From Paraphysomonas bandaiensis (Eukaryota > Protista > Chrysophyceae): a stretch of DNA of 64,000 nt. The translations under genes and the position numbers were made by a program. The stretch's first letter is position 1, and every line of letters begins with the position of its first letter. The notes beneath the pieces were generated by a model. That model saw only the letters and a program-made list of their open reading frames with translations. It searched no databases and was not told where the DNA came from. Where the stretch lies: positions 1-64,000 of the forward strand of contig CBFFRP010000435.1 of the NCBI GenBank assembly GCA_965644295.1, in the 5' to 3' direction. Positions 15,584 through 43,276 of the stretch are shown piece by piece.

Positions 15584-18500
15584 TATTAGAATATGGATCT
15601 TATTCTAGTATATTCAGTATGTCACTTCAAGACAATGTACGAGAATACAGTGAAATATAGTGATGTACAAATGCTGTGATGATATTGAGAAACTGAAATA
15701 GTTTGATCGTTCAAGATATGTTCAGTAACGAGAGGTTCGCATATGTAGGATATTATGCAGGGATTATAATGAGTTAGTGTTGGTTATCACAACTTCGTGT
15801 AAACGATATTAATAAATCTATCTAGTCTTACGACAAATTCTCTCTGTGATCTAGTGTAAAATGAGCGTTTCTCAATTTGGTAGCGAGCGAGGAGGAGAGA
15901 AGGAGGATAGAGGAGTAGTGCCACAGTTTAATGAGAGCAATGTTGAACAATGGATTGAAGACTTCGAAACGTTCCTCATGAGGAAAGAGCAAAGTGAAGT
16001 AGCGGTGGAGCCACCACCGAAGGAAAGCGACTTTGGGGAACAGCCACTCACGTTAATGGAGGAGAAGTCTTACAGACAGGCTGTGAAGAAGTACTGGAAG
16101 GCGAATGCCATAGCGTATTCGTACTGCAGAGAGGCAGTGCAAACATCTTCGAAGGCGCTTCAGAAATTCCATCTTCTACATAAAGGGTTCAAGGCTGATG
16201 GAAAAGGAAGCAACAGGTTTAAGGCGCATATTATGATTGATGAGTTGAAGAAGTGCTTTGCTGGAGGGAAGCAAAACAAGATCAGTGAGCTGTTGACTCA
16301 GTATGGATCTTTCCGTATGCGTCCGGAGGAGACTGCGAAGGACTATATAATACGGTTTGAAATACTGCTGAAAGAGCTACAGGAGCAGCAGCAGGACATA
16401 TCGGAGCTCTCAAAAATAACACGGTTACGAGAAGGTCTGTTGAATGAAGAATATGCTCCTCTGAATGTTGCTTTGTATTTGATGCCTGATGATGTTGATT
16501 ATGCAACATTATCAAGGAAGATAGAAAGGTATGATGATACCATTCCTGGAAGGATTGCGTTAGAGCGGAAACGCAAGAAGGTGGAGGAGCTGAATTTCAT
16601 TGAAAAGAGCAAACGGTCTCGAACAGAACGGGATAAGCGTAAGAAGGGCAATTGTAGATATTGCAGGAAAGAAGGAATTCCTCATAGCCATTCAACTGAA
16701 CAGTGCAGGAGGAAGCAGAGGAAGAAGGATGGAGAGATATCAGGGCAGCGTCCTGGAAGTGCTGAGTATACGGGATGCAGAAATTGCAAGTCTCTGGAAC
16801 ATCTTGCTGCTGATTGTCCAACGACGAAGAAAAAGCATTCTAGAAGAGGAGAGAAAGGGAAGAATCATGGTAGGAAGCCGGACAAAAGGCTGCTGACAGT
16901 AGAGAATATACGGCGTGGAGAACCAGCAGATTTCTCTGATGAAGATGAAGCAAATATGATCGAGGATGTTATGAAATTGTCATGCAATATACATGAAACG
17001 AATATATGTAATGTAAATGATGACATGCATTATACATATATTGACACCTGCTGTTCATCATCAATGTTCTTGATGAATGATGTGACCATGCTTGACACTC
17101 ATATGAATACATCAAAGGTGATAAACGGCTCTAAGAAGGGATCAGAGATTCATATTACAAGTGTGGGTTCCCGTGGAGCATGGAGAGACATTGAAATTTC
17201 AGATCAGATCAATCGATGCCTGTGCTCCGGACGTAAGCTGAACGAAATGGGCTATCGATTCACGGTGTGGTATGGGATCCAAATTTATGACTGTAATACC
17301 GGTGAGCTGGTACTGGAGGGACCCATGAAGAATGGAATGACTGCAGTTCCAACTCAGCAGCTGTTAGAGCTTCCAGATGTGTCTACACCGAGTAATTGTG
17401 AAGTAAATCTTAGCGATAGGACTGGTGAGGACGAGCTGGAGTTGCTGCATCGGAGAGCGGGTCACTTCAACAAACATGCCTTAGTAGAGGCACATAAGAG
17501 GATGCTCATCATGGGTACAGGGTTGAAACGAAAACACCTCACAGCCAAGGTACACAAAAATCAGTGTTTGTGTGATGTGTGTGCCAGGTCTAAGATAACC
17601 CGAGTCAGCTTCCGAACGAAGGACGAGAATTCCGTTAGACCGAATTTTTCAGCAGATATCGCTGTGTACTTAAATTGTCCTGCTAGAGGAGGTGAGAGGT
17701 ATGTGTTAAAGATAACGCATCATCATGCCACGGGTTTAGTCCACAGAACTGGGGAAGCGGTCTTAGAAGTCTTCAAAGAGCTATTTAGAGGAGATGTTAA
17801 AAGGTACAAGCTCAAGATGGAGCACTATCATGCAGATGGTGCAAGAGAGTTAATCAGTGAAGAGCTGCGTCAGTATCTTAGGACACAGGAGTGCTATCAA
17901 CATACGTGGAGCTCAACAGACTCTCCAGAAATGAATGCCATAGAGGAGAGGAAGTTCAGAACTGCTGGAGAGATGACTCTTGCAATGCTAATCCAATCTG
18001 GACTGCCACCGCAATTTTGGCTGGATGCATACATGGCAGCCAGATATATTTTGATTCGATTGCCAACGAAAACAGATAAAGGGTATATGTCTCCTATAGA
18101 GTTTCTAACGGGTGAGCCTCCAAATTTGAGATATCTTAGGGTATGGGGGTGTCGAACTTATGTTCTTTCACCGAAGGCGGATCGACGAAAGGATTGGGAG
18201 GATAAGGCTCTAGTTGGATATTTAATGGGTTACTCTGATGAGAAGGTAGGATACCATGTATATCTTCCTGAATCAAACAAGGTGGTGACTACAGTCCATA
18301 TATTGACTGATGAGTCAACGCCATCACAATCCGAGAAGTATTTCGCAGAGATTGATGCTCTTCGAGTGCGGGAGGCCGCTAGACCCAAGCTTGCATCCGA
18401 CTATGTCAGCTTAGAAGGAACGTATCATATTGATGATGAGGACGGACTTCTGTATAAGACAACAAGAGTTGTAGAACGTAAGGGTGTGATTGTAGCATAC

Positions 18501-21078
18501 CGTTCACTTGTTACTGCAGGTCGCGAGCATATAGAGCACCGGGTGCCTATATACACGTCGAAGACGTGGTGCGTATGACTGCAGAAACCCCCGGGAATAC
18601 CGGGTACATAGGAAAGGGGGACGCCCTGAGTACTACGCCAGCCAGGGAGCTGGACCAGGGAAGACCTGGAGGGTTCCAGGAGAGTCCTGACCCAACCTGT
18701 CAACAGACAGTCGTGAGGTTGCAGACCTTGACAGACCGTGGGTCTGGGGATGCGAGCGGGGCTCCTCCCACACCGCAAGATTTGCGGGCTCAGGATGAGC
18801 AAGGTATGGGTTCGTATATATCTACTAGACGACCTATTGAACTAGATGGTGATGGTCGTGTACGGCGGAAACGGCTACAGCGTAGGTTGGCGAACGCATC
18901 GGTGTTAGGAGAAATAAATATGGTTGAGGTGCCAGATGCATGCACTGTTAATTTTAAACATGCAGAGTTTCAACATGATGACTTTAAGATACCAGACTCC
19001 TATGCTGAAGCGGAGAGATCTCCACAGTACATGAAGTGGCGAGAAGCTCGGAAGGTGGAGAAGACCTCACTACTGAAGAGACGTGTCTTAAAGATTGTGC
19101 GGACTCCACGGGAAGTGAAGTTGGTGCGAGCAAAGTATGTTCACACGGTGAAGAGAGACCTTCTGGGGAATGTAGTCAAGTATAAGGCGCGGCTGGTTGC
19201 ATTAGGAAATTTACAAGAAAAAACGGAGGAGGAGCAGTCCACGTTTGCTCCAGTGGTCAAAGGAATAACCATTCGACTGGTGCTTGCAATTGCCTTTATG
19301 TTTCATATGCATGTACATCAGTTGGACGTATCATCAGCGTTTTGTTATGCCGATCTTGAGGAGGATGTTTATATGGCACCTCCACCTGATGAAGAGTTGC
19401 CAGCGGGGTGGTGTTTTCAATTGATCAAGGCCTTATATGGTTTGCGGTCATCACCGAGGCAGTGGAACAAGCATATTGACAAGTTTATCAAATCGTTACA
19501 TTTTACTGCTTGCATTTTAGATACATGCTTGTATATGCGATGGAGTAATGGTCAATTGCACTTATTGCTGATATATGTTGATGATATTATCATTGCATCT
19601 GCTGATCTCACCTACTTAGAAAGTGTTAAACGTAGGTTCTGCGAAACGTTTGAAATGCACGATCTGGGTGTGTGCAAACGGTTTCTGAATATCAGAATCA
19701 CGAGAGGCGAGGACTGGTACATGTTAGATCAATCGGAATATGCCAAGAATATTGTAAAGAAATTCGATTTGTTTATGGGGAAGAGCAGTAAGAATAAGGA
19801 GACTCCACTACCTACCAATGTTCAGGATTTGTTGGCAGAGCAACGTGAGCTGACGGAGGAGCAGAAGCAGTGGGTCGAATCATTTCCGTATAGAGGAATT
19901 ATTGGAGCGGTGTTGCATTTGGCGATTCACACTAGACCTGATCTGGCTTACGCTGTGGGGTTATTGGCTCGATTTAGTACTTCTCCAACATATGTGACTT
20001 GCAGATTAGCTATTCATTTGTTGAAATATTTACGTGGTACAGTTGATAAGGGAATCAGATTCAGTGGGAGTGAGTTTGATTTACATGTATTCAGTGATTC
20101 AGACTGGGCTGGTGATAGGATGACTAGGCGGTCCACAACGGGATACATCGTGCTTTTATGTGCGGGCGCTTTGGCCTGGCAGTCCAAGCTTCAGACCACA
20201 GTTGCGACTTCGAGCATGGAATCTGAGTATATGGCGGAGTATGCGGCTTTGCAAGAACTGATGTGGCTTCGGGGGGTGTTCAAGGAGCTCGGACTCTTGG
20301 TAGCGAAGCCGACTCCATTCTTTATGGATAGTAAGAGTGCAAAGGATCTTTCAGAGAATCCAGTGTATCATAAGAGGTCGAAGCATATTGACATCAAGTA
20401 TCACTGGATAAGAGAACATGTTAATGGAAAATTTCCTACAGCAAAGTTGATTCATGTATCTACGGATGATATGGCGGCCGATATTTTTACAAAGGCGTTG
20501 TCCACGAAGATCTTCAGCCGTCATGAGAAAACGATTACCGGGGTTAAGAGGAGTGTGTCTAACAGTGTGGAGGAGCAGCAGAAGAAACGACCCCGAAGAG
20601 GTTAAAGGTGTGTTTTAGTGGGTGAAAATCCCACATAACTGTATATCTAGTTGACTGCTAGATATATATGTATCTTTAAAAGATTTCACATCTGTTTTTA
20701 CCTATGGGACTAGATAGTCATAGCATTATCAGATTATTGTGATCACTGTTGTTTTATCTCACTGCATTCTACATTGAGTGGGAGTATTAGAATATGGATC
20801 TTATTCTAGTATATTCAGTATGTCACTTCAAGACAATGTACGAGAATACAGTGAAATATAGTGATGTACAAATGCTGTGATGATATTGAGAAACTGAAAT
20901 AGTTTGATCGTTCAAGATATGTTCAGTAACGAGAGGTTCGCATATGTAGGATATTATGCAGGGATTATAATGAGTTAGTGTTGGTTATCACAACTTCGTG
21001 TAAACGATATTAATAAATCTATCTAGTCTTACGACAAATTCTCTCTGTGATCTAGTGTAAAATGAGCGTTTCTCAATT
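15584..21078 (+). mobile_element. Full-length Ty1/copia LTR retrotransposon with one frameshift
   Basis: Apparently identical 294-bp LTRs (15584-15877, 20785-21078), 5-bp TSD AGGGT, PBS TGGTAGCGAGCG and PPT GAGTGGGAG. Confidence 0.95.
15861..20605 (+). CDS. Copia Gag-PR-IN-RT-RNase H polyprotein, frameshifted near 18550
   Basis: Zinc knuckles, HxRxGH...CDVC, integrase core, KYKARLVA, LIYVDDII, FSDSDWAGD and ADIFTK. An ATATAC two-base duplication explains the shift between ORFs 15861-18578 and 18566-20605. Confidence 0.9.
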
Positions 21079-21402: not shown

Positions 21403-23622
21403 ATTATATTGTGTAGTATGAAACTGAAGTAGAAGTGGGTGACTATACAGGATACGATCACTGAGTGTGTGGTTTGTACACTATAGTAGTAAATGAATGG
21501 TGTTGAACACATCGAACACAACTTAGGTTCTTTATCATGTAATGTCTATAATTTCATCTTATCATTTGAGAATAGTAAACCTTAGCAAATAATGTCAACT
21601 TCTGATATGGTAGCGAATGCTAGTTGTAGGGATGGGGAAGATGACAAGAAGCTACGGTTTGACAAGAACCAAGCAAACTATTCAGCGAGAAAAACCAAGA
21701 TGCATCTGATGAAGAAAAACCGAAACCATCTTGGCTTGGAGGACCCGCCAGCCGGAGGAAGGAATTTAGAGTCATGGAGAGAGCGTAATGATACCTGTGT
21801 TAGTACTACTTGGGAGGCTTGGGAGCATGACCCTGATGTATGTGTTGGAGGTAGCCAATCAATATTTGGAGGGGAAGGCAATTTTACCTGCTGATGATCC
21901 TGCTAAGGAGGTGTTATCCAGTGAGCTCCTTCAGACACTGGTTGATAGGTTCAGAGGCGAGATTGGGACTGTATTGGAGAAGACTACGGCAGAATACCAT
22001 TCGTTCAAAATAAGGCCGGGGGAAAAGGTGTCTGTTGGGGTAGATCGACTGAACGGTATAATCCAGAAGATCATAAAATTGGGACAACTGCAGATAGAGG
22101 AGTTACATGATTAATGGATGTCGGTAGCGATGATGCCTAAAGCAACAACTACATTTGATTCGGTGAAAGAGGCTTGTGAAGAGTATGACGAGGCTATGAC
22201 GCAGATGAAGAAACTAAAGGGAGACAAATCTGAAGAGATCAATTTTACAGCGTCGAAGGAGCCAGTGGTTTGTTCATTTTGTCGGAAGAAGGGACATGTA
22301 GCAGCGCTGTCTAACTAGAAAGGGTTCTCAATTGGAGACACAGGGAACTGGTACATTCGGGGAATGGAGAGACATCAGAGTTAGTGAAGAAGCGGTGAAG
22401 AACATTGTGTCAGGAGGAATGCTGAGATCAATGGGGTACGGATTACAACTGCTCCGAAAGCCTAAAACTGTGGAAACGAGGTGTTGACTGGAGAGTACGA
22501 TGAGCACGGAAGAATGCCGTATGTGGACTTGATGGAGGTGTTAAATCTGCCAAATGTGTCTATGGGCAATCAGATGGAGGAGGTAAATTTGTCGGATAAT
22601 ACAGGACAAGATGCGTTTGACCTCTTACATGAGCGTACTGGACATGTCTCGAAATCGAAGTTAATAGAAGCTCACCGACACATGTTATTCAGAGGATCAG
22701 GACTACAACGACATCACCTTTCGAAGGCAAAGGAGAAGAGTTGCAAGAAACCCCTATGTAAATGGTGTGCCAAGGCGAAGATAACCAGACACTCGTTCAA
22801 ATCACGGGACAATGAAGAGCTAAGCGCAGTCATCTCAGTGTACCTGAATTGTGAATCCAGACAAGGCTATAAGTATGTGCTTCTATTTACGGTGGCGACA
22901 AAGATGATATGGGAGTATGGTCTAAAGACTCGAAGCGGAGATGAGGTGTTCAAATGTCTACGACACTTGTGCGAGGTCCACTTAGTGAAGGACGAGGGGT
23001 GGAACCGTATAGTAGAGTATCATGCCGATGGAGGATCCGAACTTATTAGTCAGCAGATAAGAGAGTATCTGTTACAGCGATATGGGACATACAACACGAG
23101 ACACGCCAGAGCTGAACGCGGTGTTGTCTGTGAGAGGGAATTCCGAACAATTGGGGAGATGACACTGACGATGTTGACGGCATCCGGACTTCCAAAGTCG
23201 TTCTGGTTTGATGCTTATCAAACTGCATGTTACATATTGTGCGACGAATGCCAACTCGGACGTGGCAAGGATGGATGTCTCCATATGAGTGTGTCCCAGG
23301 GGGGAGCGTTCCCAGCCTATCGTGGCTACGGAAATGGGGGTGTAAAGCATATGTGCTAACACCCAAGGCCGACAGGAGGAAGGACTGGGAGGACAAAGCA
23401 ATGACAGGTTATTTCATATTATATTGTGTAGTATGAAACTGAAGTAGAAGTGGGTGACTATACAGGATACGATCACTGAGTGTGTGGTTTGTACACTATA
23501 GTAGTAAATGAATGGTGTTGAACACATCGAACACAACTTAGGTTCTTTATCATGTAGTGTCTATAATTTCATCTTATCATTTGAGAATAGTAAACCTCAG
23601 CAAATAATGTCAACTTCTGATA
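21403..23622 (+). mobile_element. Degenerate, internally deleted copia element of the same family
   Basis: LTR segment repeated at about 21403-21607 and 23418-23622, PBS TGGTAGCGA, and frameshifted gag/integrase with PKADRRKDWEDKA identical to the 15861 element. RT is absent and the 5' boundary is uncertain. Confidence 0.85.
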
Positions 23623-23625
23623 CAG

Positions 23626-24010
23626 TAGGCAGCCCAATACACCGGACGCCTGTGTATTTGTCAAGGCCCAACGACGTATACACAAGGGACACTTGTTAGT
23701 GTACCTTGTACCACACAAGCATTTGGCTATGAGTGAGCAGAATATATCTACTGACTATATATATACGGCTCAGGTTAGTTTCCCGGAGAAATATCTCCGT
23801 TGACTTCAGCAGGCAGCCCTATACCCCGGTTACCCTTCAGGTGGGCCATTCCCAGATGTCTGTTTATTCATCAGGGCCCAAAGACGTCTACACAAGTGAC
23901 ATTTACGTGTTGGTGTCCCTTGCACCACACGAGCATTCGGCTATGAGTGGGCAGAAGAATATCTGCTGACTATGTTTGCGGCTCACGTTAGTTTCCTAGA
24001 GAGAATCTCT
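23626..24010. repeat. Diverged tandem duplication of about 190 bp
   Basis: AGGCAGCCC...GGCCCAA.GACGT.TACACAAG...GGCTATGAGTG occurs twice. Confidence 0.7.
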
Positions 24011-31831: not shown

Positions 31832-33409
31832 TTACAAAACAATCATACCATGATCCCAACCATATGGTACACCTTTTCCATTTCTTGAAGGCCATTTAAT
31901 ATCTCGACGCTGCCATCTATACTCAAAATGGTTGATGAGTAACCCACGGAACTTGTCCAAAGAATATGTACGAATATGGCGAATTGCATGTTGAGCAGTT
32001 TGAGTGCTAAACTGAACATCAGTGGTATCGTCACAGTCGTCATCACCGAATCCCACGCCAGAGCAATCATACTGACGATTTCCGTTGCAGCGTGCGTTGT
32101 CTTCAGTATCATGCCAACCCAATTCACCAGCATAACGGCTTGGAACCCCTTCTCGCCACCGTTTATCAAGACCATCCACTTCTAGAAGGAAGTTGTGAAA
32201 TGCACAGCATGTTTTCCAAATCTTGTCACAACAATGAGGATGCTTCAGACGGATACCTGTCTTTAATATGCGCCATCTACCCTTCAAAATACCAAACGTG
32301 CACTCTACATCTTTACGCATAGATTCAAGCCACTTTGACCATCGTATATCTTTGAATAGACCTGTATCCTTCATTGGAGGCACTGTGCATGACCAGTCCA
32401 AGTATCCATTGTCTGATAGGACCCATGCACCTCTGAATCGATGTGGGATACCATGGTCATCATACAGCTCGTACTCTACATCCTCATATAGCCTACCTGC
32501 ACGAATATCGCATATAAATTTATCAAATTTCACAACACTTTTATCATTCCAACTGCCTGGGCAGGATGGTGATGTTGCAAGAATTCTTCGCCGATGGTTT
32601 ACAGACACATTAAACACTCTTGTTGTCTGCTGAGCTTTATGACTCAAATGACTATTCTTTAACTTCGCAGCTATCTTTTCATGAATGATATGAACTCCAT
32701 CGGTCGATGCGATAGCTCCGTTCATTCCGGCCTCTGCATATTCATGCATGCAATCATGAATATCTGCTGGAGTCTTCGGTACTGACACCCACTTCTCAAA
32801 CATAACTGTTGATCCGACATTTATAAATTCATGGAAAAATACACGATGGACCTCTTCACTTATATAAGTGGCTTCCTCAATATCATCAAAAGTCCACCCA
32901 CGACCCATATATCGTAGGCTCCCCAACAACAATAATTCGAGTGGTGAACCAGGCCTTCCAGTGCAGTCTTCTTTCTCATAACTTTTGAACCATTTTTCCG
33001 TTCTTGCCAAACTAAGGAATTCTTGAAACGAAGCGTATGGAAGCCTAAATCTTCTCCTAAACTTGCGCAATTGTTTTTTGCTCCTTTGATCTCTCAACAC
33101 ATACTGTACGTACCAAGAGGATTTGCGTGGGTCATAATCAACCCACTTGCCTTCATCGTCGTCATAATATCCTCTCTTTCCTCTCTTTCGCTTTTTCTTC
33201 GGTTCAGGTGATGGTTGATTCTCTTCTTCGATGATCTTTTGTAGAATTCCTTCCTTGCGTCGTTTTCTCCTGCTCTCCATATATTGCATGTATAACATTG
33301 GATCCAGTTCACCGTTTGAATCAAGACAAGCACTCAGCCTAATCGACATAGGCTTGATAAAACTCGTGATAACAATATTATGACTCGAGGTTCCTAATAT
33401 AGGCCGCAA
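31832..33409 (-). CDS. PIF/Harbinger DDE transposase (DDE_Tnp_4-like)
   Basis: FRRRFRLP, STDGVH, GSWND, SDNGY and RKDVECTFGILKGRWRIL. Confidence 0.93.
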   Translation of the reverse strand: MRPILGTSSHNIVITSFIKPMSIRLSACLDSNGELDPMLYMQYMESRRKRRKEGILQKIIEEENQPSPEPKKKRKRGKRGYYDDDEGKWVDYDPRKSSWYVQYVLRDQRSKKQLRKFRRRFRLPYASFQEFLSLARTEKWFKSYEKEDCTGRPGSPLELLLLGSLRYMGRGWTFDDIEEATYISEEVHRVFFHEFINVGSTVMFEKWVSVPKTPADIHDCMHEYAEAGMNGAIASTDGVHIIHEKIAAKLKNSHLSHKAQQTTRVFNVSVNHRRRILATSPSCPGSWNDKSVVKFDKFICDIRAGRLYEDVEYELYDDHGIPHRFRGAWVLSDNGYLDWSCTVPPMKDTGLFKDIRWSKWLESMRKDVECTFGILKGRWRILKTGIRLKHPHCCDKIWKTCCAFHNFLLEVDGLDKRWREGVPSRYAGELGWHDTEDNARCNGNRQYDCSGVGFGDDDCDDTTDVQFSTQTAQHAIRHIRTYSLDKFRGLLINHFEYRWQRRDIKWPSRNGKGVPYGWDHGMIVL

Positions 33410-36882: not shown

Positions 36883-38000
36883 TTAAGGAGATGGTGTCTG
36901 GAAAGGGTTAATACGCTTCTTCTTCATTGGATGATGCGGGTTACCATCGTCATCGCTATTATCTTCAGCAGTGAGATCAACAAGCGTGGGTTTGGATGGC
37001 ATACTGTTGTTTTCATAATACGACAACAATTCTTTACGAAGACGATTTGCTGAGTCTTTGTCTCCTAAGGCCTCATGCAATGCAATTTTCTTCTCAAAGT
37101 CTTCGATTTTCTGACCGTAGCATTCCAAGTCAGTGACGTAGGATTCCAATTTGTTACTCTCCTGTTGCGCAACCAAGAATTTTTTAGTTCTCTTCTTTTC
37201 GATGGCGAATTCTTCTTCCATTCTGTGCTGATTTCGTGCATCTGCTCTGCTTAATGGCGTGCTTCGATCCGCGGGCTTCGATAGATCGCAAGCCTTAATC
37301 ATTAAACTATCAGAGGAAAGAGTGCCCAACTTTTTCTTCGGTCCACAGCTTAATTCGCCACGAAGGACTGGTGAATCAAATGGTGCAGCCGGCGGACCTA
37401 GTTTTATAAATGCCAGATATGTTTGATGCATGTAATCAGGTGGGAAGTTCTTCAGCAATTGGCATTTCTCTATTTCTCGTTTTGTCATAAGGTTTGAAGC
37501 ACTGGGCTCTGTCAGAGCAGTAGAATCAGGTGATTTATCTTCACGATCATCTTGATCGTCTTGCCGGAGTTCTTTTGGACAAGGGCATTCCATAAAGGGA
37601 TATCCTCATTCTGCATCGCTCCTCCGAGTCTTTTCCATTTCTTCCAAAGCGAATTGCCTTTCGCTTGGTTGATCTTGCACTTCGCAAGTTCTTCGTGCTT
37701 CTCGATGAAGCAATCAGAAGCTGTTTTCAACAATTTCTGCCTTTCTTGTGTCGATAGCCGCGAGACAAATGCGTCGCCAGAAGCCAAATACTTATCCACT
37801 TGCCTGTTGACCATGTAAGCAATGAATACAGTGTCACAGAACTCTGATAACCTGGAGTAATAAAACGCAACCTTGAGATCCAAGAAGGATTGGTTTCCTT
37901 CCTTCTCAGCCACGGTCTCCAGCGCCGCTTCAACTGTTATTAGGTTCGAAACAAGCGTGAACACGCTTGGGGTGTTCACTTTGGTCACACTGGTGCTCAT
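36883..38000 (-). pseudogene. Harbinger accessory ORF (level 2), split across two frames
   Basis: SLWKKWK...SG and YLAFIKLGPP motifs are shared with the other accessory ORFs. Convergent with the transposase remnant. Confidence 0.6.
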
Positions 38001-38444
38001 CGTGTGTTACTTCTGTCTAAAAGATGACTTATTGTGGTTATAATGGCCTTATCAACTATTTTGACGCGAGGTCAACTATTTTAGAAAGGCAGGATTTTGG
38101 GAAATGTATAGTCAATATATGTATTACATAATACAGTGAATGAGGTTATACATGTATCGTAGAGGAATGAGAGGATGTTCTTTTCAGTTTAGTACTTGAA
38201 GTGACTGTATAAGATATGCATAGGGCACATAGAGGTGTATGGTGTTATATTATGCAGTGTGTAGTGTACGGCTGTAGAATAGAGGCATAATTTCCTCTTA
38301 CTGAGAAGTTCTGTAGTAACGATAAAGAGAACCTTGCTTTGACTACCTGTAGTGTAGACTGTGTGAAAGCAACGGGGGTATTCCGTCCGTTTATTGATTA
38401 GTAACATCCGTAACATTCGACCGAGTACCGTATTTTTCTCTGCG

Positions 38445-38459
38445 TAAGAGGAAATTATG
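38445..38459 (+). promoter_or_regulatory. Putative self-primer binding site
   Basis: TAAGAGGAAATTATG directly follows the 5' LTR and is the exact reverse complement of LTR positions 38286-38300. Confidence 0.8.
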
Positions 38460-41400
38460 AAGAAGACAACGAACGACAAGCCAACAAGATTTGCAAGATT
38501 CGGCAAGAAACCGAGCACCGATAGACCAGAACATGTACCGACTTTAAGATATGGTGCCAACTCGAACTTCGCCACATTCAAACAGAGGCTTGTAGTGGTG
38601 GGCATGCAAAAGTACGGTGATCTTGCACGCCTAGTAGAGCTGGACAAATATTATGAGCCCGATGCGATAAACCCAGAGGATTTTGATTTGGAAGACGACC
38701 CCTATGGAGTTAACCTCGACCTGATGAAGGACAAGACCAAGACCAGAGGGAGATTAATAGACAAGATGCGGAACGATAGATCGGCATTCTACTCATTCAT
38801 GGTAGACCATCTGAGCCACGAATCAATGGATGCAGTCAAGCTATTAGATGAATACGAGCTCATGAACAGGACTAAGGATCCTCCACTACTATGGCTGGCT
38901 ATCAAACAAACCCACAAAGTATCCACTAACTCCAGCGTAAGTACAGTGGTACGAGCAGAAGCGAGGAAAAGGTACAAAGACGCTAAACAGGGAGCATATG
39001 AGAGTATAGTTACTTATAAGGAGAGGTTTGATCATCTATTAGAAGCCTACAAAGACATGAACAACGCGGAAATGAATGAAGAAGACATCGCGATGGATTT
39101 CTTCGAAGGGCTGGACGACACGAGATATGGCGAGTTCAAAACTAGCTATCTCAACGATCTAACAATGGGAACGCAAACAGCACCTACGCATGTGAATGAG
39201 ATATATACAAAAGCATCAAAATATCTGACGCCGAAGAGAGCAACGAGAGCAGGCGGTGGATCCGCATTCGTGAGCAAATCGAAGTCTGACAAAGGCAAGA
39301 AATCAGCAGATAGCGATGATACACCAGAGCAGCAACAAGGGAACGACACGAAGTCGCACAACAGCAAACGTGGTCAGAAAAAAAGGCAGCTCATATGTTG
39401 GGGCTGCGGTGAGCCAGGCCACAGAATGAACGAATGCCCAGACAGTAGCCAAGAATCAGAAAACAAGCACTGCACGACAACAATGTTGAACGCCTTCACG
39501 TCAGGAAGCGAGCCATTCCAATGGTACGAGGTATTACTCGACAACCAGGCGGATGTCTCGGTAGTACACCCAAGACTACTGAACAATGTAAGACCGGCGT
39601 CCAAAGGATGCACCGTGGCGGGATTATCGGGACACGCACTGGAACTACCGAATGTAGGCGAGCTAGACCAATTCTTCACCTGTAAGACAGCAGATGAGCT
39701 AAGGGCAAGCGTGCTATGTCAGGCGGACGTAGAAGACATATATGAAGTGACATATAGGCAGGGAGAGTCTTTCACTGTCCACTTACCTGACAGTGATTTG
39801 ACTTTCTATCGAAAGAACAAGATGTATGTGGCCGACATGCGCGACTGGGCGACGGCCAAAGTCAACGTAACGACTGTAGCGGAGCGCGAAGCCCAATATT
39901 CGAAAGTAGAAGTCGCGAGAGCACGAGAAGCACGAGACCTGATCCGAAACTCGGGCTTCGACTCGGAGAGAGATGCTGTGCAGCTAGTGAGCGACGGAAA
40001 CGTTACAGGGGTGCGACTTACCCCGAGTGATATCAGAAGAGCTTTTGACATATATGGGAGGCCGTTCGAAGCAGTGAGAGGCAAGCAGACGAATAAGAAA
40101 GTCAGCCGGCAATACGCGGATCCGGAACTGAAGGCAGAACAGCAGAAGGAGCAAAGGCTGTACACAGACATCTTCAGTGTGAGACAGCAATCGTTCATGC
40201 TCACACTAGCGGAACCATTGGGACTAACCATCGTTACTTCACTCGAAAACGAAACAACGGATCAGTTGGGATTGGCCCTACAGGAACAAGTAAACCTGTT
40301 AAGAAGCTACGGGTACATACCGACAGTTACCTACCTGGACCCTCAGCCGGGATTCAAGGCCCTGAGAGGCAAAATCACAGGGATGGAGATTGACGTGGCA
40401 GGGGCTGGAGATCACCTGGACAAGATCGACGCGAAGATTAGGCGACTCAAAGAGACAATACGCAGTGTACATTCAGGGCTACCATGGAACCTACCAGATG
40501 CCAACGTCAGAGACCTGGTGAGATACGCCAACAGCCGCATGAACTTGAGGAGGCCATCCACCAATGGCACAACTGTAGCACCGCGAGTGGCATTGACTGG
40601 TCGGAAACCCAATTATAAAAAGGAACTGTCACTGGCTTTCGGGGACTACGTAGAATGCTATGACCCGAAGGTCAAGAGCAATAACGCGGAGCAGGCCAGA
40701 ACAGAACCATGTATCGCGCTGTACCCATCCGGCAACGCAAACGGGAGTTGGATATTTTTAAACCTTAAAACAAATAAATATGTGAGTAGGACCAACTGGG
40801 TGAAGATGGTGACCACGCAAATAGTAATCGACGCCGTGAATAGAATATCGTCATTGCACAACAAGTCACACTCACCTGTCACGACCAGTGAGAATGAGAG
40901 TCGAGAGATCGAGGATACCACGCCACCAGCTGAGAATGACGAGATCGATAAGCCGAAGGAGCCTCACGAGGAGGGGCAGATGACAGCCATTGACACAGAC
41001 GAAGGGCACGGCCACACAGAAGAGAGAGAGAGAACAAAAATCACGGAACTAGTCGACGATGATGGCGACAGGGCTGATGGGCCGAGCGAACAGGAACCGG
41101 GCGCTGCAACACCCAACGACATCGACGATCCGGAAATTACAGGGGTGGAAACTACAGGGATGACACACAATACAAGCGAAGTACTATCATCACCATCAGC
41201 CGGAGTATCATCACCATCAGCCGGAGCAAGGATAGCGGCAGGCACAAGAAGAAAGCCCGTAATGTATCGAGCCTATCACACAAGCGTAACCAAAGGCTTA
41301 AAGGAACACGGCAAAGAAGCCTACCTGGCGATAGTACGGGAGCTGAAGCAGCTGCTGCATGAAAAAAAGGCGATAGTTCCAGTACACCGGAGTGACCTGT

Positions 41401-42860
41401 CCAAGACTCAACTCAAACGATCAATTCGATCGCTGATGTTCTTGAAGACGAAATACGACGGACTCGGAAGGTTCGAGAAAATCAAGGCGAGGCTGGTTGC
41501 GAACGGGGCGCAGCAGGACCGGAAACTGTACCCAGACACGTCGTCACCCACTGTGGACATACAGTCAGTATTCGCATGCCTAGCAATAGCAGCGAGAGAG
41601 GGGAGACATGTATCGACAATTGATATAGGTGGTGCATACCTCAATGCGGAGATGTCAGGCGAAGAGGTAATAATGGAATTGGAGCCGATGTTGGCCACAA
41701 TACTCAGAAAACTAGACCCCACAATCCAGCCGTATGTTGATGAAAGAGGCAAAATATTGGTGCGCCTAGACAAAGCGTTATATGGATGCGTGCAGAGCGC
41801 CAAGCTCTGGTACAACACGATAAGAGCTTACCTGGAAAGCATTGGTTTCGTGGCTAACCCGGTGGATCAGTGTGTTCTCAATAGGACTGTCAACGGCAAG
41901 CAGTGCACTATAACACTACACGTGGACGATCTGCTAGTGCTATCACAAGACAAGCGTGACACCGAGTGGTTGGTGGAACAACTAAAGAAACAATATGGTG
42001 AGGTAAAATACTGTGATGACAAAGACATGTCGTATTTAGGTATGCATGTGAGCATGATAGATGACAGGGCAGTGGTGTCAATGAGGGCTTACCTAGACGG
42101 AGTGCTGGAGGAGGCAGCGGTCACTGGCAGAGCAGCATCTCCAGCGACATCATCACTGTTCACAGAGGGCGCAGGACAGAAATTGGGGAGGAAGGAGGCT
42201 GCCAATTTCCATTCAGTGGTGGCCAAATTGCTATATCTGTCAATAAGAGTTAGACCAGACATCCTGCTCAGTATAGCGTACCTCACAACAAGAGTGAAGG
42301 GTCCGACAATCGGAGATCAGCAGAAGTTGAATCGAGTGCTGAAATACCTTGCGCACACAAGGGATCAAGATCTGCAGCTGAAGATTGGAGAACAGCTGCG
42401 GGTAAGAAGCTTCATCGACGCTTCGTTCGCCACCCACGAAGACGGAAAAGGGCATACAGGCGTAGTTGTACAGCTTGGGGGGGCCACAGTACTATGCCGA
42501 TCAACTAAGCAACGAATCGTGACGAAAGACTCGACCGAATCCGAGCTGGTCGGCCTATCTGATATGATGTCTAATGCAATGAGATTACATGAGTTTGTGT
42601 GTGGGCAGGGCTATGCGCTTGACCCACCTGTTATTTATCAGGACAACTTGTCGAATCTCAGTCTCGTAACGAAAGGAGGAGGCAAATACCGATCGAAATA
42701 TCTACGAGTAAGGCAGGCTTTAGTCGAAGAACACCATGATAGGGGAGACGTGAAGCTTCAGTACTTACCTACAGGAGAGATGTTGGCTGATGTGCTGACT
42801 AAACCCCTACAAGGAAAATTGTTTCGTCATTTGATATGTCTGATCGTTGGGAACGAGTAG
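38457..42860 (+). CDS. Copia polyprotein Gag-PR-IN-RT-RNase H, 1467 aa
   Basis: CWGCGEPGHRMNEC, LLDNQAD, integrase core before RT, KIKARLVA, KALYG, LHVDDLL, FIDASF and ADVLTKPL. Confidence 0.95.
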   Translation: MKKTTNDKPTRFARFGKKPSTDRPEHVPTLRYGANSNFATFKQRLVVVGMQKYGDLARLVELDKYYEPDAINPEDFDLEDDPYGVNLDLMKDKTKTRGRLIDKMRNDRSAFYSFMVDHLSHESMDAVKLLDEYELMNRTKDPPLLWLAIKQTHKVSTNSSVSTVVRAEARKRYKDAKQGAYESIVTYKERFDHLLEAYKDMNNAEMNEEDIAMDFFEGLDDTRYGEFKTSYLNDLTMGTQTAPTHVNEIYTKASKYLTPKRATRAGGGSAFVSKSKSDKGKKSADSDDTPEQQQGNDTKSHNSKRGQKKRQLICWGCGEPGHRMNECPDSSQESENKHCTTTMLNAFTSGSEPFQWYEVLLDNQADVSVVHPRLLNNVRPASKGCTVAGLSGHALELPNVGELDQFFTCKTADELRASVLCQADVEDIYEVTYRQGESFTVHLPDSDLTFYRKNKMYVADMRDWATAKVNVTTVAEREAQYSKVEVARAREARDLIRNSGFDSERDAVQLVSDGNVTGVRLTPSDIRRAFDIYGRPFEAVRGKQTNKKVSRQYADPELKAEQQKEQRLYTDIFSVRQQSFMLTLAEPLGLTIVTSLENETTDQLGLALQEQVNLLRSYGYIPTVTYLDPQPGFKALRGKITGMEIDVAGAGDHLDKIDAKIRRLKETIRSVHSGLPWNLPDANVRDLVRYANSRMNLRRPSTNGTTVAPRVALTGRKPNYKKELSLAFGDYVECYDPKVKSNNAEQARTEPCIALYPSGNANGSWIFLNLKTNKYVSRTNWVKMVTTQIVIDAVNRISSLHNKSHSPVTTSENESREIEDTTPPAENDEIDKPKEPHEEGQMTAIDTDEGHGHTEERERTKITELVDDDGDRADGPSEQEPGAATPNDIDDPEITGVETTGMTHNTSEVLSSPSAGVSSPSAGARIAAGTRRKPVMYRAYHTSVTKGLKEHGKEAYLAIVRELKQLLHEKKAIVPVHRSDLSKTQLKRSIRSLMFLKTKYDGLGRFEKIKARLVANGAQQDRKLYPDTSSPTVDIQSVFACLAIAAREGRHVSTIDIGGAYLNAEMSGEEVIMELEPMLATILRKLDPTIQPYVDERGKILVRLDKALYGCVQSAKLWYNTIRAYLESIGFVANPVDQCVLNRTVNGKQCTITLHVDDLLVLSQDKRDTEWLVEQLKKQYGEVKYCDDKDMSYLGMHVSMIDDRAVVSMRAYLDGVLEEAAVTGRAASPATSSLFTEGAGQKLGRKEAANFHSVVAKLLYLSIRVRPDILLSIAYLTTRVKGPTIGDQQKLNRVLKYLAHTRDQDLQLKIGEQLRVRSFIDASFATHEDGKGHTGVVVQLGGATVLCRSTKQRIVTKDSTESELVGLSDMMSNAMRLHEFVCGQGYALDPPVIYQDNLSNLSLVTKGGGKYRSKYLRVRQALVEEHHDRGDVKLQYLPTGEMLADVLTKPLQGKLFRHLICLIVGNE

Positions 42861-43276
42861 ACACATCACAGGGGTGCGTAGAGGAATGAGAGGATGTTCT
42901 TTTCAGTTTAGTACTTGAAGTGACTGTATAAGATATGCATAGGGCACATAGAGGTGTATGGTGTTATATTATGCAGTGTGTAGTGTACGGCTGTAGAATA
43001 GAGGCATAATTTCCTCTTACTGAGAAGTTCTGTAGTAACGATAAAGAGAACCTTGCTTTGACTACCTGTAGTGTAGACTGTGTGAAAGCAACGGGGGTAT
43101 TCCGTCCGTTTATTGATTAGTAACATCCGTAACATTCGACCGAGTACCGTATTTTTCTCTGCGTGTATAATGGTATGTATTACATAATACAGCGGTATGT
43201 ATTCTAGCTGTTGATATGGTTTGATACATACATGACATTACTATGAGATTACACGCATGAATAGAAGGTCTATAGC

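Follow-up and report, generated by a model that had tools for sequence, protein, structure and literature searches.

The LTR retrotransposon located at 38158-43163 (5006 bp) of a Paraphysomonas bandaiensis contig (CBFFRP010000435.1) carries within its own LTR a perfect complement of the sequence that follows this LTR, and self-priming of reverse transcription, of the type known from Tf1, is probably the best explanation for this organization. The whole stretch of DNA analysed, referred to as the window, has a length of 64,000 nt. The reading is based on the position of the complementary site, on the predicted fold of the leader and, above all, on paired changes of both arms in related elements from aquatic protists.

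Structure of the element

Detection of direct repeats returned two copies of 288 nt with 100% identity (38158-38445 and 42877-43164), which were trimmed to 287 nt after the flanks were read (Table 1). The LTR start, CGTAGAGG, is the same in an independent insertion with a different flank, a 98%-identical element present in two metagenome assemblies (L092/L093), and the LTR end in CG was seen also at the junction between 3' LTR and flank in L004. The polypurine-like motif recurs in L001, L003, L086 and L092. TG...CA termini are usual for Ty1/copia elements, without being strictly defining; the focal element has CGT...GCG instead. In L002-L012 and L040 the LTR ends read CGT...(A/G)CG, and the 3' junction ACG/T (the slash marks the LTR end) is kept across much of the clade. 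With this junction, the 3' AC of the putative primer pairs with the G and T which span the boundary between the LTR and the site.

The identical LTRs, the duplication and the intact ORF point to a very recent insertion of an apparently autonomous element. The earlier annotation had named the same three features as signs of recent activity, and all of them were confirmed: 287-nt LTRs with 100% identity, TGTAT on both sides and an ORF of 1467 aa. A 19-nt direct repeat, TATGTATTACATAATACAG, stands on either side of the insertion point (38118-38136 and 43174-43192), and a minus-strand ORF (37512-38000) starts about 155 nt away, with the insertion on its upstream side. GTAT ends each of the two known 5' flanks of the family (window and L092), a hint of target preference.

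Table 1. Features of the focal element in the window and complementary arms of distant relatives
Feature	Position or locus	Strand	Remark
5' target-site duplication TGTAT	38153..38157	+	same 5 bases at 43164-43168, just outside the LTRs
5' LTR, 287 nt, CGTAGAG...CTCTGCG, not TG...CA	38158..38444	+	100% identical to 42877-43163
TATA-like TTATATTAT, presumed U3	38245..38253	+	33-41 nt upstream of 38286; read from sequence
Putative self-primer segment CATAATTTCCTCTTAC with initiator-like CA at its start	38286..38301	+	exact 16-nt complement of 38444-38459
Extension helix, 5' arm GAGAA	38303..38307	+	pairs with 38436-38440 in minimum-energy and centroid folds
Extension helix, 3' arm TTCTC, end of U5	38436..38440	+	fold prediction
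Putative PBS: last LTR base G38444 and 15 nt TAAGAGGAAATTATG	38444..38459	+	abuts U5; includes gag ATG at 38457
gag-pol ORF, intact, 1467 aa	38457..42860	+	open reading frame
Polypurine-tract-like CACAGGGGTG	42867..42876	+	directly upstream of 3' LTR; read from sequence
3' LTR with second copy of primer segment at 43005-43020	42877..43163	+	repeat and exact match
3' target-site duplication TGTAT	43164..43168	+	read from sequence
Distant-relative arm TAATATAGTTTTAC	L005
Distant-relative arm CTTTTAATTAAGAC	L006, L086
Distant-relative arm CTTTTTCCTTTAAT	L085
Distant-relative arm TTAATTGAGTAATAC	L012
Distant-relative arm CTTTTTAAAGTAAAC	L088 (Chaetoceros)
Distant-relative arm, 28-mer complement	L017

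Encoded protein and classification

A reverse transcriptase domain of the RVT_2 family was identified by Pfam at aa 989-1225 of the gag-pol ORF (E 1e-26, 94.5 bits versus a cutoff of 31.6). The zf-CCHC zinc knuckle at aa 314-328 scored below the curated Pfam cutoff and gave nucleocapsid matches in a profile search of the PDB, where it was the sole match of the focal ORF. No Pfam match was obtained in this ORF for integrase (rve), protease or RNase H. The integrase, at about aa 470-800, was recognized by structure: a model of aa 470-850 (pLDDT 77) matched retroviral integrases in Foldseek with an E-value of 5e-10 and a probability of 1.00. The C-terminal region is conserved and is taken as a putative RNase H from conserved motifs alone in the alignment of relatives (A1).

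Since the ORF stops about 240 aa after the reverse transcriptase, there is no space for a downstream integrase, and the succession of zinc knuckle, modelled integrase and RVT_2 gives the order gag-(PR)-IN-RT, which is that of Ty1/copia. With RVT_2, an integrase upstream of the reverse transcriptase and a target-site duplication of 5 bp, the focal element is of the Ty1/copia type. It lacks one usual feature of this superfamily, a PBS that pairs with a tRNA, either at its 3' end or internally, and has in its place an AT-rich site which differs per lineage. Elements of the Tf1/sushi clade carry a gypsy-type reverse transcriptase and an integrase with chromodomain after RNase H, whereas here RVT_2 is found with the integrase upstream. 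The element would work like Tf1, yet falls outside the Tf1/sushi clade.

Complementarity between LTR and primer binding site

The exact 16-nt reverse complementarity of 38286-38301 and 38444-38459, reported in the first-pass annotation, was verified on the sequence. Within the window the 16-mer is confined to these two sites and the 3' LTR copy at 43005-43020, and only 0.07 matches would be expected by chance in the window with up to two mismatches allowed. Neither TGG nor a tRNA-like site follows the 5' LTR, where TAAGAGGAAATTATG was read in agreement with the same annotation. A tRNA search of the window gave no hit and an Rfam search across the focal element no family; a scan for bacterial promoters and terminators is irrelevant to a eukaryotic LTR. 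Because minus-strand DNA can regenerate U5 only from the site at 38444-38459, the PBS must lie there. An operational criterion for self-priming has been published, namely an LTR complement of at least 10 bp that starts 0-5 bp after the 5' LTR (PMC6317226), and the complement of the focal element, with 16 nt starting at the last LTR base, falls within it.

The leader of 177 nt folds with a minimum energy of -52.7 kcal/mol (z = -4.24), and none of 200 shuffled sequences was as stable. In this fold the 16-bp duplex closes the leader. Pairing beyond a small internal loop, which had also been proposed, is present as a 5-bp GAGAA/TTCTC helix. This extension helix was found in L002 as well; TAACGAG stands in its place in L003 and L004.

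Other elements in the window

Two further LTR elements of the window served as controls. The first is a second copia, very distant from the focal element (25% identical in the reverse transcriptase), with essentially identical LTRs of about 294 nt at approximately 15584-15877 and 20785-21078 and a canonical TGGTAGCGAGCG site from 15878. The gag ORF of this copia starts with an ATG within the 5' LTR (15861), and two overlapping ORFs encode gag-IN and RT (15861-18578 and 18566-20605). Directly downstream, a pair of LTRs of about 209 nt with 98% identity (21403-21611 and 23418-23626) was found 2015 nt apart. TGGTAGCGAATG follows the first copy of this 2.2-kb pair, which encloses an ORF of 292 aa (22481-23359); from its sequence it looks like a small LTR element, possibly non-autonomous, with the same tRNA-type site as the second copia.

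In both controls TGGTAGCG, the usual type of site for a tRNA 3' end, stands directly after the LTR, and the complement to their own LTR reaches just 6-7 nt. Ordinary tRNA priming is thus available in this host; the focal element has no site of that kind. Pfam analysis of ten neighbouring ORFs identified WD40, LRR and Harbinger transposase domains as well as the second copia. A search started from the WD40 protein gave no informative names. The transposase is encoded on the minus strand (31832-33409, 525 aa) and has a DDE_Tnp_4/Plant_tran domain of the PIF/Harbinger type. Together with the three LTR elements, this ORF marks the window as transposon-rich eukaryotic DNA.

Conservation and covariation in related elements

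About 200 relatives were found by protein search, nearly all from aquatic metagenomes (Tara Oceans and JGI) and one from the transcriptome of Chaetoceros sp. GSL56. The product of this Chaetoceros transcript, 38% identical, is the nearest named relative. DNA was fetched for 93 loci, most of them LTR-collapsed metagenome contigs in which LTR ends were placed by pairing and by the conserved ACG/T junction, not by flanks.

In 19 lineages with 29-98% protein identity, the sequence after the LTR is complementary to a segment in the middle of the LTR over 10-28 nt, and the letters vary by lineage. Among close relatives the changes can be followed base by base: in L003 (68% protein identity) a C-to-T change of the LTR arm is compensated by G to A in the site, each arm of L004 (59%) differs at three positions, and both elements retain 16 of 16 pairs. 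Further away, down to about 29% identity, the arms are unrelated to those of the window and still complementary to each other over 10-28 nt (L005, L006, L007, L012, L015, L016, L017, L037, L040, L085, L086, L088 and L090). The arms listed in Table 1, from relatives at 29-48% identity, match as exact complements of 14-28 nt. The longest complement between LTR and leader was 14-28 nt in 17 of the 26 near-full-length relatives, above every control, with controls of about 40 internal windows and 200 shuffles per locus and maxima of 8-15 nt. In L008, L010, L013, L022, L025, L026, L027, L030 and L063, some of which have an incomplete ORF start or LTR, it was merely 7-11 nt.

As divergent leaders could not be aligned in register by MAFFT, a scripted comparison in the same register was performed for 18 lineages. 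The arms of one and the same lineage paired at 14 of 14 positions in 15 of the 18, and arms combined across lineages at a mean of 6.7 of 14 and at no more than 11. Two to four types of Watson-Crick pairs occur at each of the 14 positions. The duplex formed part of the minimum-energy fold in all 18 leaders, and in the RT-RNase H tree the trait spans the whole sampled clade, including the deepest branches. The first-pass annotation had made its proposal depend on complementarity of LTR and PBS being conserved in relatives; this complementarity is both conserved and covarying in the 18 lineages compared in register.

In view of these data, a chance origin of the complement has a negligible probability. 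Background pairing is raised by the AT-richness of the arms, and shuffled sequences occasionally reach 13-15 nt; nevertheless, the controls were exceeded at 17 independent loci and own arms pair at 14 positions against 6.7 of 14, beside the 0.07 matches expected in the window, so that chance is refuted as an explanation. Host priming, by a tRNA, a tRNA half or another small RNA able to pair with TAAGAGGAAATTATG, with the copy in the LTR as an incidental match, would have a precedent in copia-type elements that use internal tRNA fragments (PMC6317226). It is very improbable here and close to refuted, because the site varies by lineage, the LTR segment varies with it, and the other LTR elements of the same genome have an ordinary TGGTAGCG site.

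L092 and L093 represent one genomic copy in two metagenomes; its 5' LTR belongs to the window type, its partial 3' LTR to that of L003. The site of this copy pairs at 16 of 16 positions with the 5' LTR and at 15 of 16 with the partial 3' LTR. The unlike LTRs may come from a true recombinant or from a (repeated) assembly chimera.

Position of the transcript ends

The dinucleotide CA borders the LTR arm on its 5' side in 17 of 18 lineages (in one lineage TA is read) and was found again in L088 and L090, while the surroundings diverge. The first paired base of the duplex is the C, the A or the one that follows the A. Such a conserved CA fits an initiator-type transcript start at the A. The TATA-like sequence TTATATTAT that had been annotated upstream of 38286 is indeed present at a distance of 33-41 nt; its position is, however, not conserved in relatives and the motif is degraded even in L003, which makes it weak evidence.

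In the Chaetoceros transcript contig (L088/L089) the poly(A) site was located 14 nt past the primer segment. R must therefore be short, not above about 30 nt, and either contain this segment or border on it. The 5' end of the contig lies 12 nt inside the primer segment and keeps its last 3 nt; it is the sole transcript contig with a 5' end there. This end is compatible with a start at the CA followed by the usual loss of 10-20 nt from RNA-seq 5' ends, with RNA left over from primer cleavage, and with a real start further downstream. Since L088 and L089 are isoforms from a single assembly, they are not independent. Other candidates for start-site evidence were rejected: L087 and L091 are internal antisense fragments, and L085 and L086, from Logan, are cycles with collapsed LTRs in which RNA and DNA are indistinguishable. 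Apart from L088/L089, and from L087 with its minus-strand tail, no fetched locus has a poly(A) tail.

The same contig bears on a different form of self-priming, in which the capped 5' end would not act in cis and the 3' LTR copy, or the segment of a co-packaged RNA, would pair with the PBS and prime or cyclize the genome. The segment is surely present 14 nt before the poly(A) in Chaetoceros, where the 5' end has only the last 3 nt of it, and it occurs likewise in the 3' LTR of the window (43005-43020). We regard this form as unlikely, since the CA is conserved at the 5' edge of the segment, a local fold is strongly favoured across leaders of 110-230 nt, and a cut in the 3' copy would presumably sever the 3' R required for strand transfer. 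The better match of the L092/L093 PBS to the 5' LTR also speaks against it, with the reservation that this contig may be chimeric.

Proposed priming mechanism

According to the preferred reading, self-priming from the 5' end, transcription would start at the conserved CA (38286/38287), so that CAUAAUUUCCUCUUAC would form the first 15-16 nt or so of the RNA. This 5' end would fold back over an R-U5 leader of about 140 nt onto the last U5 base and the 15 nt after the LTR (38444-38459). The RNase H of the element would cut the 5' strand where the duplex ends, probably near 38301/38302, and the predicted primer is an RNA of 15-16 nt, CAUAAUUUCCUCUUA(C), derived from the 5' rather than the 3' copy. 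Synthesis from its freed 3'-OH would proceed across U5 and what remains of R, followed by transfer of the product to the 3' R. During plus-strand synthesis the primer would be copied into DNA, and the PBS would be matched again to the LTR in every cycle. By analogy with the inheritance of tRNA-primed sites, such rewriting would explain why the arms match perfectly in almost every lineage.

A wider reading would be that the relatives form an old copia clade of diatoms and other aquatic protists which is wholly without tRNA primers, uses about 14-16 nt at the start of its own capped RNA for priming, rewrites the PBS from the LTR in each cycle and originated independently of the Tf1/sushi chromoviruses and of plant TAR. 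This is put forward tentatively, as quite possible though short of probable.

Leader structure and gag start codon

The gag AUG lies inside the duplex solely in the window copy (38457), L001, L003 and L004; it is found 7 nt downstream of the duplex in L002 and 2-76 nt downstream in the others. The annotated overlap of duplex and start codon is thus true for the window copy and these three relatives and does not extend beyond them. A switch between translation and reverse transcription by burial of the AUG, which had been suggested as a possibility, is consequently not a feature of the clade. As the presumed cap-proximal end is sequestered in all lineages, some competition between folding of the leader and translation is plausible.

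The same structure could form a panhandle of the leader that acts in packaging, dimerization or translation control, the primer being some host RNA; pairing of U5 with the AUG region in HIV-1 is a comparable case. Such a role would be in line with the presumed cap-proximal end being sequestered in every lineage and the gag AUG in the sublineage of the window, and with a further conserved hairpin in U5, which marks a structured leader. This reading is improbable, given that the start of the 3' arm coincides with the U5 boundary, the one position for a minus-strand primer, that the arm is AT-rich and different per lineage, so that no shared host RNA could fit, and that no alternative TGG or tRNA-like site follows the LTR, the searches for tRNAs in the window and for Rfam families in the element having been negative.

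The U5 hairpin is located about 65-110 nt into the leader (38343-38357 in the window) and is present in L005, L006, L008, L010, L085 and L086. Its stems covary (gac/gtc, agc/gct, ggc/gcc, gatac/gtatc, ggtttc/gaaac and ctac/gtag). The loop CUGUACA contains the palindrome UGUACA and is a candidate kissing-loop site for dimerization; in the sublineage of the window the loop is CUGUAGU or CUGUAGC and non-palindromic.

Antisense RNA of the family

Two transcript-derived contigs, L087 and L091 (one MMETSP fragment and one from a Tara Oceans run), are without short segments of 46-112 nt. The missing segments correspond to minus-strand GT..AG introns with good donor consensus at 39976-40021, 40278-40334, 40416-40494, 40764-40875 and 41273-41324, and L087 carries a minus-strand poly(A) tail. 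These findings indicate that the interior of the polyprotein gene gives rise to an antisense RNA which is spliced and polyadenylated. It is without a long ORF, the longest having 151 aa. The splice dinucleotides are kept at 5 of 5 introns in L001 and at 3 of 5 each in L002 and L003, and are mostly lost in L004.

Comparison with known self-priming systems

Self-priming has been inferred for the Tf1/sushi and Tcn1 groups of Ty3/gypsy. For Tf1 of Schizosaccharomyces pombe it was shown experimentally: the first bases of the RNA are complementary to the sequence right after U5, and a fold-back duplex forms before the proposed RNase H cut (PMC7175516). The focal element resembles Tf1/Tf2 and the Tf1/sushi elements in the absence of a tRNA-type site and in a 5' LTR segment complementary to the post-U5 sequence (PMC7175516). 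It differs by a duplex which reaches 14-16 and up to 28 nt in its clade versus 11 nt in Tf1, by its superfamily (RVT_2, integrase upstream of RT) and by LTR termini of CG...CG, and is known from sequence alone.

Among copia elements, a GalEa type from fungi also has no tRNA-type site; there a Conserved Hairpin Site replaces the PBS and the authors found no LTR sequence complementary to it, whereas the complement of the focal element is exact and conserved (PMC5445492). The CoDi lineages (CoDiI, CoDiII, CoDi6) are Ty1/copia-like elements of diatoms which also occur in ocean metagenomes, and their primer binding sites are not discussed in the paper that describes them (PMC2806351). By description they are similar to the focal clade in copia type and in diatom and aquatic-metagenome sources, the one link being the 38%-identical Chaetoceros sp. 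GSL56 product. No report of self-priming in copia elements of diatoms or other protists was found in the literature searched.

Demonstrated self-priming has so far been limited to Tf1-type gypsy elements, with a sequence prediction for one plant lineage in copia. The focal clade shows the same signature in an unrelated host group, together with compensatory changes in 18 lineages, the strongest evidence short of biochemistry. This suggests that self-priming is widespread in the genomes of aquatic protists, where the elements are abundant and transcribed. The apparently active copy of the window (identical LTRs, intact ORF) and the natural variants of the arms could serve directly for compensatory-mutation tests in a transformable diatom. 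Elements independent of tRNA would escape annotation tools based on the PBS and host silencing aimed at tRNA-type primer sites. If the independent origin of the clade is true, self-priming would be a recurrent solution across superfamilies of LTR retrotransposons, and the elements would escape any host control based on tRNA fragments.

The view in the first-pass annotation that copia elements are solely primed by tRNAs or tRNA halves is outdated. The copia families Houba and Osr-1 have been suggested to prime themselves, and the same is predicted of the entire TAR lineage of plants, which includes both (PMC6317226); a self-priming copia is therefore not new in kind. Plant TAR elements are among the closest parallels, being Ty1/copia elements whose post-LTR sequence is complementary to their own 5' LTR under the same operational criterion (PMC6317226). 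The hosts of TAR are green plants, whereas the clade described here belongs to marine and freshwater protists and shows covariation of the two arms across 18 lineages.
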